A stretch of 64,000 nt of DNA from Chlorokybus atmophyticus (GCA_009103225.1 RHPI01003256.1:92091-156090); one strand, 5' to 3'. Shown: positions 36,549 through 43,800, counted from the first letter of the stretch. Notes: generated from the sequence alone by a model not told the origin. Program-made: numbers and translations.

Positions 36549-38079
36549 ATATTTGAGAGTCCTCTTGTTGATGGGCTCATGCCTGGCACCATGGGATGAT
36601 GATGCCATGCATTAGTTGAGCTGTTTTGGTGAGCCATTGGCACTTGTGCTGAGTTGAGTTAGTTACATGACTATAAGGTCGTATTGCGGGCTTTGCCTAT
36701 GCCATGCTTGCACAATCAGGACGTTCACAGAGACACTCACTCAACTACAGCACTCTACACCCATTGACATGGCGCACATGTTCAACTGCACCCACAGCAC
36801 ACATCAATCTTAGTTGAACCTTGCACAATGTTGCAACTCGAGTCACAGGCAGACAGGGTGATATCGCTACAATTGGATCCATTCACCGATTGGCAGCCTC
36901 AGGCAACCGCTTGTACTGCTATGGTTAACATAAACTTTCATGAACAACTTGGTAAGTGTGCAAGACAGATTTAACTACATAGCATAGCAGGCGCAACAGG
37001 ACAAAGAGCTTGGACCTGAGCCAAAGAGAAGTGACGAGCAGCAACTGTCTCGACTTGCGCCACACCCATAGCACCGTTATAGAAATGAAGCAACTGCCAT
37101 GACATGAGAGCAGTTTAACCTCACCCCACGCCAGGGTGGGGCACCCAGCTCCCCCAGCCTCTTCCAAACAACCAGCCCACGAACAAAGTACTTTGACGAC
37201 CTGAGCAGCATTGGAAGAGGACAACAGCAGCGACAACGCTGACAACGCCAGCGACAATGCCTCTTCTGTTGATGGCGTTTGCGCGCCTTATGACATAGGT
37301 GTTGTGCCGCAGCTCTTGTGGCCATTGGAGTTGTGCTGGAGCAGACGAGGAGCCGACATGCTCCAGCTGGTGTCGTCAAGGTCATAAGGATATATGACTA
37401 CGACCAGCTCCGGCAGCGCGCGTGACGAGGTTGTCGGTGTCCCATGTCTTGTGCAGGATTTGCTGTGTGTACAAACAGTATGGGGGCATAGTCAGCATTG
37501 TTTCCAACCAACCAAGCCTGCGTCTCTTCGTAATGAGACACGTACCTGTATAAGTTTCCAGAGTCTTGAGCGACCTTGTGAACATTGGGAACAACTTCTC
37601 ATTGACAACGTCAAACACCGTATCAATGCTCCCGTACCCCAGCAGAAACACCACAGCATCAACCTGTGTCTGCTGGAATCGACGGTGCAGCTGATTGGAC
37701 AGATGCACGTTACGCAAGTGACCATCTAGTCATTGCAGCATCCTTACAAACCCTTGCCCCCTAGCGCTTGATGCCAATGTACCTTGTGAATGCTCTACAC
37801 TCGCACAGATTCATGCTGAAAACAAATGCTCCTGGTCACGATGACATTGATACACATATGCGCTGCAGAAAGCCAACACACGGATGGACGGATGGATGGA
37901 TTCAACGCCTAGATGCAGTCACAGCCATCTGAGAAAACACTATGTACCTTCCACTGATGTTACCGTCACAGCCTATGCTACCCTACCTTTGCTCAAACTA
38001 CTGTACACTTCATGTGCAAAATGTGTGTCACACACGTCACATCTCAGAGCAAGTCTCTCTCTCCTTAACTCCCCACCCT

Positions 38080-40220
38080 TTAGTCTTTCCTCTTGCTCCC
38101 CATCCAGTTGGCGACGACAGGCGTGAGGGCGACGGTGGGAGGGAAGCGGATGGGGCTGGCCGCCTTGTGGGCCGCGTACGCCAGCGCGATAGTGCCAAGC
38201 TGAGACCCACCGCTGTCCACCTGCGTGTGTGTACACATCTGTCTGTTCATCTGTGTGTACACCCAAGCTGCATTCAACCCAAGTCTCACACCTGTATCCC
38301 GGCAAGCGAGAGGAGAGCTGCAACATTCACACCCGCGTTGACAAGGGCATAGCACACCCCGAAGGAGATGACCGAGAGCGACACCGAGGTGGCCAGGTAG
38401 GCGCCACCATACCTGCATATGTACTAGTGTTTGTGGTTTGTGGTGTTTGGTGTGTACTTCACTAATGTGAATTGGGGTGCAATCAGTTGATACTAGCGCT
38501 GGTGAATAATACTCCATCAAACAGCCAGACACGTGTGCGCAAACATGTAAACGCTACGTACGACACCATACAAAAGTGTGCATGCACATGTCAACAAGAA
38601 AGTCTGCTTCTAACAGAGCTGTGTACCATTGGTCGCTTGTGAATGTTGTCTATGAGACTGCCAGCCTCCACCCCACGCTTGCACACGCAGTGTTATGTGT
38701 ACCAAAGCCGCACCCCGCCAGCCAGCAAACACCAACATGCATGCTTAATTCAGCAACAAATCAGTTTGCTGATGTAAATATCTGGTGGTGGGGTGGGGGA
38801 CTTGCTATCTTATGCGCCGTTAGCAGTGTGCATGGAACGACAACAGCAAAGCGATACTGCCATTATTCAACATTGAAGAAACAGTAACGCATGTGCAGTT
38901 ACAAAGCGGAAAGAGGGAGAGAGATTACCATACCATCCCATACATGCACGCATGCATGTTAGCAACATGTACAGACTCAACAACAACACACCTTGCCAGC
39001 AGGTCCTTGGCTGTTGTGCCCATCTTCTCCCCATCTTCCCCCTCATCCCCCTTGCTCTTGCTCATGGTATTCCTGAGGGCTCTGAACAGGCCAGCCTGCA
39101 GCCCCTCATCATCACTATCATCCTCACCCTTACTTTTCTTTCTATTATCCACATCATCCCCCTTCTTCTTGCTCATGGTATTCCTGAGAGCTTTGAACAG
39201 GCCAGCCTCCAGCCCCTTATCACCATCATCCTCACCCTTCTTGTACTTACTGCTATCCACATCATCCCCCTTGTTCTTGCTCATGGTATTCCTGAGGGCT
39301 CTGAAGAGGCCAGCCTCCAGCCCCTCATCACCATCATCCTCACCCTTCTTGTACTTACTGCTATCCACACCATCCCCCTTGTTCTTGCTCATGGTATTCC
39401 TGAGGGCTCTGAAGAGGCCAGCCTCCAGCCCCTTATCACCATCATCCTCACCCTTCTTGTACTTACTACTATCCACATCATCCCCCTTGTTCTTGCTCAT
39501 GGTATTCCTGAGGGCTCTGAAGAGGCCAGCCTCCAGCCCCTCACCACCACCATCATCCTCACCCTTCTTGTTCTTACTGTTGTTGTTGCTCATGATACTC
39601 CTGAGGGCTCTAAACAGGCTAGCCTCCAGCCCCTCATCACCATCATCATCCTCACCCTTCCTGTTCTTACTAGTACCCACATCATCCTCCCCCTTGTTCT
39701 TGCCCATGGATTTCCTGAGGGCTCTAAACAGGCCAGCCTCCAGCCCTTCATCACCACCATCATCCTCACCCTTCCTGTTCTTACTAGTACCCACATCATC
39801 CCCCTTGTTCTTGCCCATGGTATTCCTGAGGGCTCTAAACAGGCCCGCCTGCAGCCCCTCATCACCACCATCATCCTCGCCCTTCCTGTTCTTACTACTT
39901 TTGTAACTATTTTTGAGGGCCTTGAACAGGCCAGCCTCCAGCCCCCACTTGCGGGTGACAGCCTCTACCTCATCAATTACCTTGTCGGTCACAGCGTCCT
40001 TCACCACCTGCCCCACACCTCCGCCGCCCTTCTTGTTATCCCCCTCCTTCAGGGCGCAGAGGGCTGCTTGGTGGTGGCCCCTGACACTAACGCTCTGTCT
40101 AGCCACATGTGGAAGGCGGAGGCCTCTGCCGCCGCCCCTGCTGGAGGTGGAGGTCCTGCAGGGCGACAGGGCGGAGACACACGCCGATGCTGAAGTGGAC
40201 GCTGTTGCCGTCATCATCAT
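38080..40220 (-). CDS. Plastid-targeted DUF1279/FAM210-like membrane protein with an internal 9x repeat
   Basis: Transit peptide, then repeats, then a spliced C-terminus AKDLLARYGGAYLATSVSLSVISF...ALAYAAHKAASPIRFPPTVALTPVVANW, which I recognise as the plant DUF1279 signature. Confidence 0.85.
39045..39948 (-). repeat. Coding minisatellite, 9 units of about 29-38 aa (GLEAGLFRALRNTM + K/D/G-rich spacer)
   Basis: Nine GL[EQ]A[GS]LF motifs counted in ORF 38925..40220; all indels preserve the frame. Confidence 0.95.
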
Positions 40221-40487
40221 GGGCTACGGGTGTGGCTGTGGATATTGTTGTGATGGCTGCTCGTGCTGTTTCGGTTGTTGTCCTCGCTGCTGTGGTGGAT
40301 GTGGTTGCCGTCGCCGCCGCAGTGTGTCTATCGCATGCAACGGCTGTGGATTCGCCCTATCCCCGATGTTCGCTGTAAGCATGCCGTCGGCACGGGAGGC
40401 TTGGACTTGTATGCCCAATTTGTTCAACGTTAATGCAGAGGCGGCGGCCGCGTGCATAAACTCTCAGTACTACTTGCACACGGTCCT

Positions 40488-40899: not shown

Positions 40900-43800
40900 C
40901 CTCTTCTTCAGCTTGTATGTGTTAGGGCGGGTGCGTTCTTACATAACATAAAGACCGGACCATCTGGGTTTAAGTTTTGTAGTTTGATGAATAACCCCAT
41001 CGTGACCATACTTACGTTTCTTGGAAGTCATGCGGACAGTCTTCACAAGGACCCGATCACCCACAGCGTACTCCACTGTCCTGTGGCGCGCGTCATGATT
41101 TTTTTTCTGGCGGTCCTGTGCCGCACGTAGGTTTTCGGCTGCCACCTCCCGCAGGATAGGCAACTCCTGTGAGAGTTGCTGATACCAAGCGGAGCTGTCG
41201 ATGGCGGGACCGTACGAGGGTAGCTGAGCCTGTGGTGGGAGCTGAGCCTCGCGGCCGTACAGCAGACGGAATGGAGTGTGGCCGGTTGAGGCGTGTATGG
41301 ACGTGTTATAAGCAAATGTTACGGCCCCCAAAATGCTATCCCAATTGGTGTGGTACTCGTTGATGTATTTGGCGATAGTCCTCTTCAAAGTCCTGTTCAT
41401 TCTCTCAACCAACCCGTCCATCTGAGGATAATACGGTGAAGTAAAAGTTTGAGCAATGCCAAGTGCGGCGGCAACGCGAGCCATAACCTCGCCCGTAAAG
41501 TATAGGCCGCAATCAGATAAAATCTTTTTAGGGCAGCCGTGGCGCTTAATGATGGCGAGAAGAAATGATGCAACTGTGTCAGCGTTGACGGCTGCGATGG
41601 CCGCGATCTCTGTCCAACGTGTCACATATTCAGAACGTACAATGATGTACTGATTGCCCCCCCCATTGATGTTGGCAGAGGTCCGGTGATGTCCCAAGCC
41701 AGTAGATCGAACGGCTTGCCGACGGCGATGGGCTGGAGCTCTCCCGCGGCCTTGCCGTGCGTGTCGTTGTGGCGCTGACAGGTGTCACAGCTTCTGACAA
41801 AGTTGTGCACGTCAGCACGCAAGCCGTGCCAAAAGTACGAGGCGCGGACGCGCTCCAAGGTTTTGTGAAAGCCAAGATGCCCCATCAGTGGGTCATCATG
41901 GCAGGCTGACAGGTACACGAGATAAAAGCGCGCCGGAATGACCAGGAGCGGCTCCGACCCTGCGACGCAGGTGTACAGCAGGTCGCTGTCAGGATCGCCG
42001 TGCAGTACGTACGTGAGTGTACCAGCAGGTACGGTACCCAGGACCCCCGATGCCAGCATGGTGCGCAATTCGCGTAACTTGGGTTCCGTCATCTGGGCCC
42101 GCCGTATCTCAGTAACGCTGGGCAGGTCTGGCCTGGTCGGTCTGAGCAAGGTTGGCGGGGGCGGTGGCGTCTGTGGCGTAGGCAACGGCGGCGGCGGAGG
42201 CGATTGCTCATGCTGGTCACCTAGGGCAGGTAGTATAGCAGGTGACCGGCGTGGTTGCACCGTCGGAGGTGCAGCAGACTATGAGATCTCAGCTGGATTA
42301 CGCTGAGTGGTAGTGCTTGGGGCGGCCTTGTAGAGCAGTGCAGGCAGCTGCACAGGGGCGGCGGCGAGGGCGCCGGCGCTGCGGTTGTCCTCATAGGGTT
42401 CAGTAGGGTTGTAGGAACCAGCAGGAACGTCCTGGTAGGGCTCAGGAATGAACGACCAAGTGTCAGTAGAATGGCTTGCAGTAGGTGCAGTACTGGCAAC
42501 TAACGCTGTCTCCCGTGGCTGCGGTGCATTGCTGCTGTCTGATGTCTATGAGCGTGTCACTCTGCTTCGTGCTCTGCGTGGTGGCTGTAGCATGTTCGAT
42601 ACCCAACGTGATGCTTGAATGTCACCAACCATGTCCACCGGTGCGCGTGAGAGCGCGTCAACATCACCACACAAGGTCCCCGGACGGTGTGTGATAGTGA
42701 AGTCATAGGCTTGCAATGACAACACCCACCGGGCAATGCGACCTTTGGGTTGCTTCGTGCGTAGGAGCTGCACCAATGCGCTATGATCCGTTTCGATGTA
42801 CACATCCGCGCCATGTAGGTAGGGATGAAGCTTGTCGAAGGCCCACACCACCGCGAGACACTCGCGCTCCGTCGTAGTGTAGTTCTTTTCCGCCGGCGTT
42901 AGTGAGCGCGACGCGAACAATAGGGGCGCATACGCATCATGTGGATAGGAGTATTGCAACAACACGAGGCCAAGCCCGTAGTTGCTGGCATCCGTGCGCA
43001 ACACAAAGCTTGATGTGAAGTCCGGGAAGTGTAACAGAGGTGCTGAGGCCAGTGCGGACTTCAGCTCGAACGCAACCTGGCAGGCTTCCGTCCAGCTGAA
43101 GGTCACGTCTTTGCATACGAGTGCACGCAAGGGAGCTGACACTGTGGCGAATCCAGGTACGAAGCGTGCATAAAACGCACACATCCCAAGGAAACGGCGT
43201 ACTGCTTGTACACCGTTGGGCTCGGGGAACTGGCTGATAGCGGCAGTCTTGTCAGGGTCAGCGCGTAGGCCCTGTGCTGATACGATAAGCCCAAGAACTT
43301 TAACGTGCATACGGCAAACAGGCACTTCTTCTGGTTGAGTACGATGCCGGCTGTTTCGAGCCGCTCAAACACCTGTTGTAGATGTTCTCCGTGCTGTCCG
43401 ACACTCTTGGAACACACGAGGATGTCGTCTAAGTAGATAAGTACAAATGGTAGGTCATGGAGGATGTCGTGCATCAGCCGCTGGAAAGTCGCTGGTGCGT
43501 TGCACAGTCCGAATGGCATTACTGTCCATTCGTATAGTCGTGTAGTGTCTTTGCGCGGCTGTCTCCGTGCATACTGACTTGCCAGAAGCCGGAGGCAGCG
43601 TCCATCTTAGAATATACTCTGTACCCTTGTAGCTTGTCGAACATAGAATCAATGCTCGGCACAGGATACTTATCGTTTACGGTCACATCATTCACAGCTC
43701 TGTAGTCGACGCAAAACCGTTTGGTACCGTCTGGCTTGGCAGCAAGGACCACTTGACTGCACCATTCCGAGGATGAGGGCACGATGAAGCCGTGCTCGAG

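Follow-up and report, generated by a model that had tools for sequence, protein, structure and literature searches.

A 64,000-nucleotide stretch of the Chlorokybus atmophyticus genome (GCA_009103225.1, RHPI01003256.1:92091-156090; called the window here, all positions being counted from its first letter) carries on its minus strand a three-exon gene whose coding part occupies 38080-40220. In identity and architecture this gene is very probably a nucleus-encoded paralogue of DEIP1/NTA1/CPLD64. The module that has been multiplied in it, a GLEAGL[WF]-type helix of about 14 residues plus the short charged linker preceding the membrane helix in relatives, is present in nine in-frame copies which arose via tandem duplication of a ~108-bp unit. 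Taken as a whole, the view that this DEIP1-type paralogue acts in the cytochrome b6f pathway and bears a multivalent array on the stromal side is on balance favoured. The family and its b6f role were already known; the ninefold array in a second gene copy is new.

The Arabidopsis member, AT2G27290, was described in two 2022 papers as DEIP1 (PMC9279372) and as NTA1 (PMC9860185). It is an integral thylakoid protein of 201 amino acids (aa), with a transit peptide (residues 1-39) and a DUF1279 domain (104-184), and cytochrome b6f does not accumulate in deip1/nta1 mutants (PMC9279372, PMC9860185). Similarly, the cpld64 mutant of the Chlamydomonas orthologue CPLD64 (A8IL11, Cre12.g485850) is depleted of the whole b6f complex and has been rescued (PMC10760936). 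DEIP1/NTA1 has been described only since 2022 and its mode of action is disputed, either as an assembly factor or as a protection of b6f from an effect of PGR5.

A DEIP1-type membrane domain behind nine copies of one helix

The protein searches and the fold prediction for exon 1 were done exon by exon. The FAM210A-B_dom (DUF1279) model PF06916, with a cut-off of 26 bits, matches exon 2 (E 1.7e-8, 35.3 bits, profile 10-48) and exon 3 (E 4.6e-9, 37.1 bits, profile 58-88). Exon 2 is the sole exon hydrophobic enough for a membrane span (Kyte-Doolittle 19-residue means of 1.2-1.8). In an alignment of 43 sequences (A1), 27 of the 27 invariant DEIP1-type columns and 15 of the 19 near-invariant columns are kept. 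Identity of the domain to 42 orthologues is 53.0/86, versus 51.3/86 for P0063, the canonical Chlorokybus paralogue, and the array-bearing protein is the closer of the two to 29 of the 42. The family assignment follows from the two PF06916 matches, the complete set of invariant positions and a domain as near to the orthologues as that of P0063. The short C-terminal tail is basic and plant-like (ANW.G.K); this tail is required for NTA1 function (PMC9860185). A Foldseek search of the P0063 model against the PDB returned nothing at E<=0.001 and the DUF1279 fold is therefore without a solved look-alike by that route.

P0063 (221 aa; labelled Chlorokybus atmophyticus, JGI Chlat1 Chrsp22S03469) contains only one motif; among the relatives retrieved, none matches the array protein better overall. 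Both proteins contain ALCALKEG where the presequence ends, and a run of 14 residues surrounding the motif, VEAVTRKWGLEAGL, is identical in the two. However, their membrane domains are identical at 54/86 positions, whereas the orthologue from a diverged sister lineage (X4) differs from the array protein at only 2/86, and P0063 is therefore a different gene, a paralogue. An AlphaFold2 (AF2) model of P0063, built with 43 aligned relatives, places the motif in a helix (residues 92-102) with a predicted local distance difference test (pLDDT) score of ~89, followed by a long helix (107-144) with the hydrophobic segment and by further helices in the part corresponding to exon 3. The array-bearing copy is not the degenerate one of the pair: it retains all 27 invariant positions, is slightly closer to the orthologues than P0063 and has a plant-like basic tail.

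The array itself lies in exon 1. Nine matches to GL[EQ]A[GS]LF[RK]AL[RK] start at residues 93, 122, 159, 197, 228, 264, 300, 336 and 373, each followed by a K/D/G/S/N-rich spacer; the motif of the first unit reads RKWGLEAGLF. The tandem periodicity is far beyond chance: Tandem Repeats Finder detects 7.9 copies of a 108-nt period (78% matches, score 949) and a higher-order period of 216 nt (score 1116). Two public RNA runs of one organism, X1 (2021) and X2 (2013), provide contigs which align to the locus with zero differences. These exact contigs tile the array with no joint inside, so that the repeats are exonic, and short RNA contigs verify the u1/u2, u2/u3, u3/u4, u4/u5, u7/u8 and u8/u9 junctions. 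Identity between units is 68-99% at the DNA level and reaches 97-99% among u5-u7. It is therefore the assembly that gives the count of nine, and in particular the number of u5-u7-type units, which the short RNA contigs do not verify.

The gene is expressed and both of its introns are confirmed by RNA contigs. In X1, depth is 11 on intron 1 versus ~800-1000 on the exons. The product is predicted to be 496 residues long (409 + 1 split codon + 40 + 46), the ATG is at 40220 and the stop codon ends at 38080, precisely the limits that an earlier reading of the sequence alone (the sequence-only reading) had given. The array is carried by the open reading frame (ORF) 38925-40220 on the minus strand, and there is no upstream ATG in 40317-40221. 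The poly(A) site is located by an X1 contig with a loose end of 25 T before 37930 (plus strand). For intron 2, a depth-3 contig of X4 has the same joint as X1 and X2 (38217>38289), and the main X4 contig has 38224>38296. The features are as follows.

40221-40317, minus strand: 5' untranslated region, ~97 nt; limit given by RNA contig ends at 40317 (X1) and 40314 (X2)
38992-40220, minus strand: coding part of exon 1, 409 codons + 2 nt by translation; donor GT at 38991-38990
40047-40220, minus strand: residues 1-58, start resembling a chloroplast transit peptide by composition, ending near ALCALKEG
39945-40046, minus strand: residues 59-92, pre-motif segment ending VEAVTRKW, modelled as helix; the shared 14 residues are identical in P0063
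38994-39944, minus strand: array of nine helix-plus-spacer units, in exact X1 and X2 RNA contigs without internal joints
39858-39944, minus strand: array unit u1, 29 aa
39747-39857, minus strand: array unit u2, 37 aa
39633-39746, minus strand: array unit u3, 38 aa
39540-39632, minus strand: array unit u4, 31 aa
39432-39539, minus strand: array unit u5, 36 aa
39324-39431, minus strand: array unit u6, 36 aa
39216-39323, minus strand: array unit u7, 36 aa
39105-39215, minus strand: array unit u8, 37 aa
38994-39104, minus strand: array unit u9, 37 aa, passing into TTAKDLLA(R), the ancestral sequence that leads up to the membrane helix
38413-38991, minus strand: intron 1, 579 nt, GT..AG; joint 38410>38990 (cut +2, skipping 579) in X1, X2 and X4
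38292-38412, minus strand: exon 2, first half of the FAM210/DUF1279 domain with the hydrophobic membrane helix; PF06916 E 1.7e-8
38221-38291, minus strand: intron 2, 71 nt, GT..AG; joint 38217>38289 (cut +3) in X1 and X2
38080-38220, minus strand: coding part of exon 3, with the second DUF1279 half, a short basic C-terminal tail and the TAA stop; PF06916 E 4.6e-9
37930-38079, minus strand: 3' untranslated region, with a poly(A) site near 37930

Residues 1-58 contain no D/E, 15 S/T, 9 A and 7 R/K, and resemble a transit peptide in this composition. No hydrophobic stretch was found across the 409 residues of exon 1 (highest Kyte-Doolittle 15-residue mean 1.0), hence no lumen-targeting signal. 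The array is a polyampholyte (62 K+R versus 65 D+E, 16% G, isoelectric point (pI) 5.57). In the AF2 model of exon 1 alone, whose confidence is low (mean pLDDT 43), all motifs are helical and all spacers are coil. Over its 14 residues the motif helix has a hydrophobic moment of 0.44, which makes it moderately amphipathic, and over LFRALRNTMSK the value is 0.68; L2, L6, A9, L10, M14 and F7 form the hydrophobic face and R8, R11 and N12 the polar one. Plant versions of the motif have a lower moment (0.14-0.25). An ESM Atlas feature search with residues 60-409 gave no usable match. The Pfam matches of exon 1 to SAPC2_N, Hypoth_Ymh and Epiglycanin_C are weak, with no stretch passing alone, and were dismissed as repeat or composition noise.

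The sequence-only reading had thus described a DUF1279 membrane protein with a transit-peptide-like start and a ninefold helix-plus-spacer amplification, to be checked as exonic in RNA. That description of architecture and family stands on the PF06916 matches, the nine motif matches and the RNA contigs, the start being supported by its composition and the helix/coil pattern by the low-confidence model. It had missed the known function of the family and the existence of P0063, and the functional link that it drew to pyrenoids and Rubisco fares differently, as discussed below.

Two observations concern the locus at large. About 0.6 kb upstream of the transcript start, a 252-aa ORF (40939-41697, minus strand) resembles a retroelement integrase core and may be relevant to the history of this region. 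Moreover, run X3, which has another organism label, covers 38577-38737, 38910-39193 and 40027-40181 at 100% identity and a depth of ~3-4, intron included; it is probably DNA of the same strain filed under another species name.

Copy number, constraint and turnover of the array

The statement, in the sequence-only reading, that plant relatives have a single motif proved accurate. In the alignment supplementing the DEIP1 paper (PMC9279372), the 17 orthologues, from 16 land plants and from Chlamydomonas, all have one K[YF]GLE[AVF]GL[WL] motif, within a module whose order is motif, KDEEEG-type acidic stretch, AKELLAKYGGAYL and membrane helix. A search with exon 3 of 1.84 billion representative proteins retrieved 354 relatives at E<=0.001, of which 125 at E<=1e-10, with identities of 66-84% to the listed relatives (57% for the two-stretch top match). 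Among the best 150 of these 354, 55 have exactly one motif and none has more, which together with the 17 orthologues supports the general form K[YWF]GLE[AVF]GL[WFL]; the other 95 are mostly fragments, variant motifs or motif-less lineages. Each of the long matches (244-788 aa) was inspected as a possible array; all proved to be fusions or to be extended at the N-terminus, and none has more than one motif. The comparison of motif counts between pyrenoid-bearing and pyrenoid-less species, which the sequence-only reading had suggested, gives a single motif in Chlamydomonas and in land plants alike.

The window's own protein is absent from both protein collections searched (the word index and the 1.84 billion representatives). 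Word-index searches with exon 1 and with residues 62-110 gave no match, self included, so that the locus has no entry of 110-716 aa in that collection; with the whole of exon 1, low-complexity words probably swamped the query.

Other members of the family show further architectures. P0051 (268 aa) and P0087 (360 aa) have a DEIP1-type DUF1279 domain without GLEAGL between the halves of a multi-span membrane protein and may represent a fusion family. In P0081, P0091 and P0160, very long Closterium-type models of 739-971 aa, the DEIP1 domain occupies the end; one of them has an AP2-like stretch and one has the AKDLLTRYGG segment three times. These are probably merged gene models and not true arrays. 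DEIP1-type proteins also occur in secondary-plastid algae, including P0113/P0172 (Pavlovales), several of them with signal-peptide-like starts; haptophyte copies have a single GLEAGLF motif and several other secondary-plastid algal copies have none.

Comparison with the sister lineage shows purifying selection on the membrane domain. Between X4 and the reference, exons 2 and 3 have 12 nucleotide differences in 11 codons, nine of them synonymous and two conservative (I>L, N>D). At 38327 (exon 2, codon 29; column D148 of A1), the residue is Asn in the reference but Asp in X4 and in 90% of relatives. Within the array, the helix positions G1, L2, A4, L6, F7, A9 and L10 are invariant in the protein, four of them with synonymous differences, and the replacements seen in the helix between units are E/Q, G/S and K/R. 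The ratio of nonsynonymous to synonymous polymorphism (pN/pS) among units is 0.48 for the helices and 0.73 for the spacers, values based on small counts and blurred by concerted evolution.

The lengths of all nine units are multiples of 3. The degree of identity between units shows that the array grew in stages, with old edge units and a young, near-identical u5-u7. Moreover, X4 expresses repeat units with other joints (39586>39287 and 39046>39791), and the array therefore turns over between lineages. The 39046>39791 joint was considered as a two-unit allele and rejected, since the contig begins only 105 nt upstream and other X4 contigs carry more units; it reflects a different unit order and not copy number.

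These properties bear directly on the main rival explanation, a tolerated expansion, in which a coding minisatellite in a disordered linker would have grown by slippage or unequal crossing-over in a redundant paralogue with no new function, the protein working, or idling, as an ordinary DEIP1 despite its array. Such an origin would account for the 68-99% DNA identity between units, the youth of the three central ones and the higher-order period of 216 nt, for the spacer pN/pS of 0.73 and for the different unit order in X4 (39046>39791, 39586>39287), and the canonical paralogue P0063 could bear the essential role. However, nine units and several indels have left the reading frame intact, no replacement occurs in the helix core although synonymous changes do, and the anchor is conserved no less than the one in P0063. 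Moreover, two or more lineages, separated by ~10 synonymous sites in the 258 nt of the anchor, express the array, and what has been amplified is not a random linker but the motif in which the G72D allele described below falls. A tolerated expansion is judged unlikely, although it deserves the most weight among the alternatives.

Possible roles of the multiplied helix

A suppressor of pgr5, p5s21, carries the G72D substitution in the "soluble N-terminus" of DEIP1/NTA1; it behaves as a loss of function though the protein accumulates, and it has been proposed that DEIP1/NTA1 shields b6f from a negative effect of PGR5 (PMC11449078). In the published alignment numbering, read from machine-read alignment text, the block ...YGLEVGLWKIL ends at residue 81, which makes G72 the first G of YGLEVGLW. 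This only reported missense allele falls on the first glycine of the amplified motif, and the equivalent glycine is invariant in all nine units.

Most likely the protein is anchored in the thylakoid membrane through DUF1279 and still acts in the pathway of b6f biogenesis or stability, the array, probably facing the stroma, displaying nine copies of one short helix on a flexible polyampholyte tether. The partner of the single DEIP1 helix could then be engaged with high avidity, or several partners could be held simultaneously; a b6f subunit, a PGR5-related factor and the membrane surface are candidates. This multivalent mechanism is a serious but tentative proposal.

Stromal exposure of the array is probable, because no hydrophobic signal precedes the span and the flank N-terminal to the membrane helix has a net charge of +2, against -1 for the loop that follows it. 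Some 350 charged residues precede the span, and a segment of this kind and length without a lumen-targeting signal is hard to place in the lumen, which bears on the topology of DEIP1 in general. In Arabidopsis only the C-terminus has been mapped, to the stroma, the lumenal position of the N-terminus being deduced from a single predicted span (PMC9279372, PMC9860185). With both ends on the stromal side, the exon 3 segment would dip back into the membrane.

Several points weigh against the proposal of a multivalent stromal array in the b6f pathway. The N-terminus is shown as lumenal in both Arabidopsis papers (PMC9279372, PMC9860185). In yeast two-hybrid assays the DUF1279 domain of NTA1 alone bound b6f subunit(s) and the N-terminal part alone bound none (PMC9860185). 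The pN/pS values indicate only mild constraint, blurred as they are by concerted evolution; the different arrangement of the array in the sister lineage fits rapid turnover; and the AF2 model of exon 1 is of low confidence. Finally, it is from the Arabidopsis and Chlamydomonas proteins that the localisation, the partners and the role in b6f are extrapolated.

The helices might alternatively act on lipid, without a protein partner. Nine amphipathic Arg-bearing helices could tether or shape thylakoids or confine the protein to non-appressed regions. The hydrophobic and polar faces of the helix, with moments of 0.44 (14 residues) and 0.68 (LFRALRNTMSK), its position next to the membrane in all relatives and the concentration of DEIP1 at grana margins (PMC9279372) agree with such a role. 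However, the moment and the mean hydrophobicity (0.04) are modest, anionic thylakoid lipids would repel the acidic spacers, and the plant motifs, with moments of 0.14-0.25, are strongly conserved in sequence nonetheless, which suggests a specific contact. A purely lipid-bound array is therefore regarded as very unlikely.

A more radical extension of the multivalent array would be a neofunctionalised, stroma-facing scaffold, in which nine DEIP1 helices cluster a stromal-side partner at particular thylakoid domains. PGR5/PGRL1-type factors or newly made b6f subunits could be the partners, Rubisco at thylakoids crossing the pyrenoid being the least likely. We consider this scaffold quite unlikely. 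If it were true, it would represent a natural high-avidity version of the DEIP1 motif and would imply that the DEIP1-type N-terminus is stromal, contrary to the published models. The natural variant in any case shows that helix and linker form a self-contained module able to be multiplied, and the array could serve as a high-avidity bait for the partner of the helix.

Comparison with pyrenoid tethers and with the DEIP1 family

The sequence-only reading had proposed a Rubisco-binding membrane tether of the pyrenoid, in which the helices serve as stickers as in EPYC1 or RBMP1/2. The sticker-spacer layout on a membrane anchor is suggestive, and the Chlorokybus chloroplast has two pyrenoids (PMC8611356). 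Moreover, Rubisco-binding motifs vary between lineages and lack of the Chlamydomonas motif does not preclude binding (PMC7673724). For Rubisco-binding pyrenoid proteins such as EPYC1, RBMP1/2 and SAGA1/2, that motif is [D/N]W[R/K]xx[L/I/V/A], the WR or WK dipeptide being needed (PMC7673724). The array protein has no match to it and neither WR nor WK; the single W of exon 1 precedes G.

EPYC1-type linkers have a basic, disordered repeat region. The array, in contrast, is near-neutral, with 62 K+R versus 65 D+E and a pI of 5.57. The motif belongs to the ancestral make-up of a family in which mutation causes loss of b6f, whether the species lacks pyrenoids (Arabidopsis) or has them (Chlamydomonas), both species having a single copy, and a text search of the literature found no link of CPLD64 (Cre12.g485850) to the pyrenoid. 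The published topology, moreover, puts the N-terminal end in the lumen; if it is right, the array is lumenal and unable to meet Rubisco. For these reasons the pyrenoid/Rubisco link is not upheld; a pyrenoid tether is extremely improbable and the array gene opens no route to pyrenoid biology.

The likeness to RBMP1/RBMP2 and EPYC1 of Chlamydomonas is thus one of layout, namely several short helical motifs with flexible spacers, placed in the RBMPs on a thylakoid membrane anchor. There is no sequence relationship, the Rubisco-binding motif is absent from the array protein, and the array is not basic and repeats a motif from a b6f-related family. With the mitochondrial FAM210A/FAM210B of animals, compared by Pfam model only, the protein has the PF06916 domain in common, in another organelle. 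P0063 is nearer, but its domain is no closer to that of the array gene than are those of orthologues from other green lineages, and its C-terminal tail is divergent and Asn-rich.

The closest likeness is to DEIP1/NTA1/CPLD64. It comprises the FAM210/DUF1279 domain with its 27 invariant positions, a start resembling a transit peptide in composition, the K[WYF]GLEAGL[WF] helix, an acidic/basic linker, the AKDLLA(R/K)YGGAYL lead-in and the short basic C-terminal tail. The differences are that the module is present nine times instead of once, in a protein of 496 aa instead of ~170-230 aa; that the W after GL is replaced by phenylalanine in all nine units; and that the array gene is a second copy beside a canonical paralogue.

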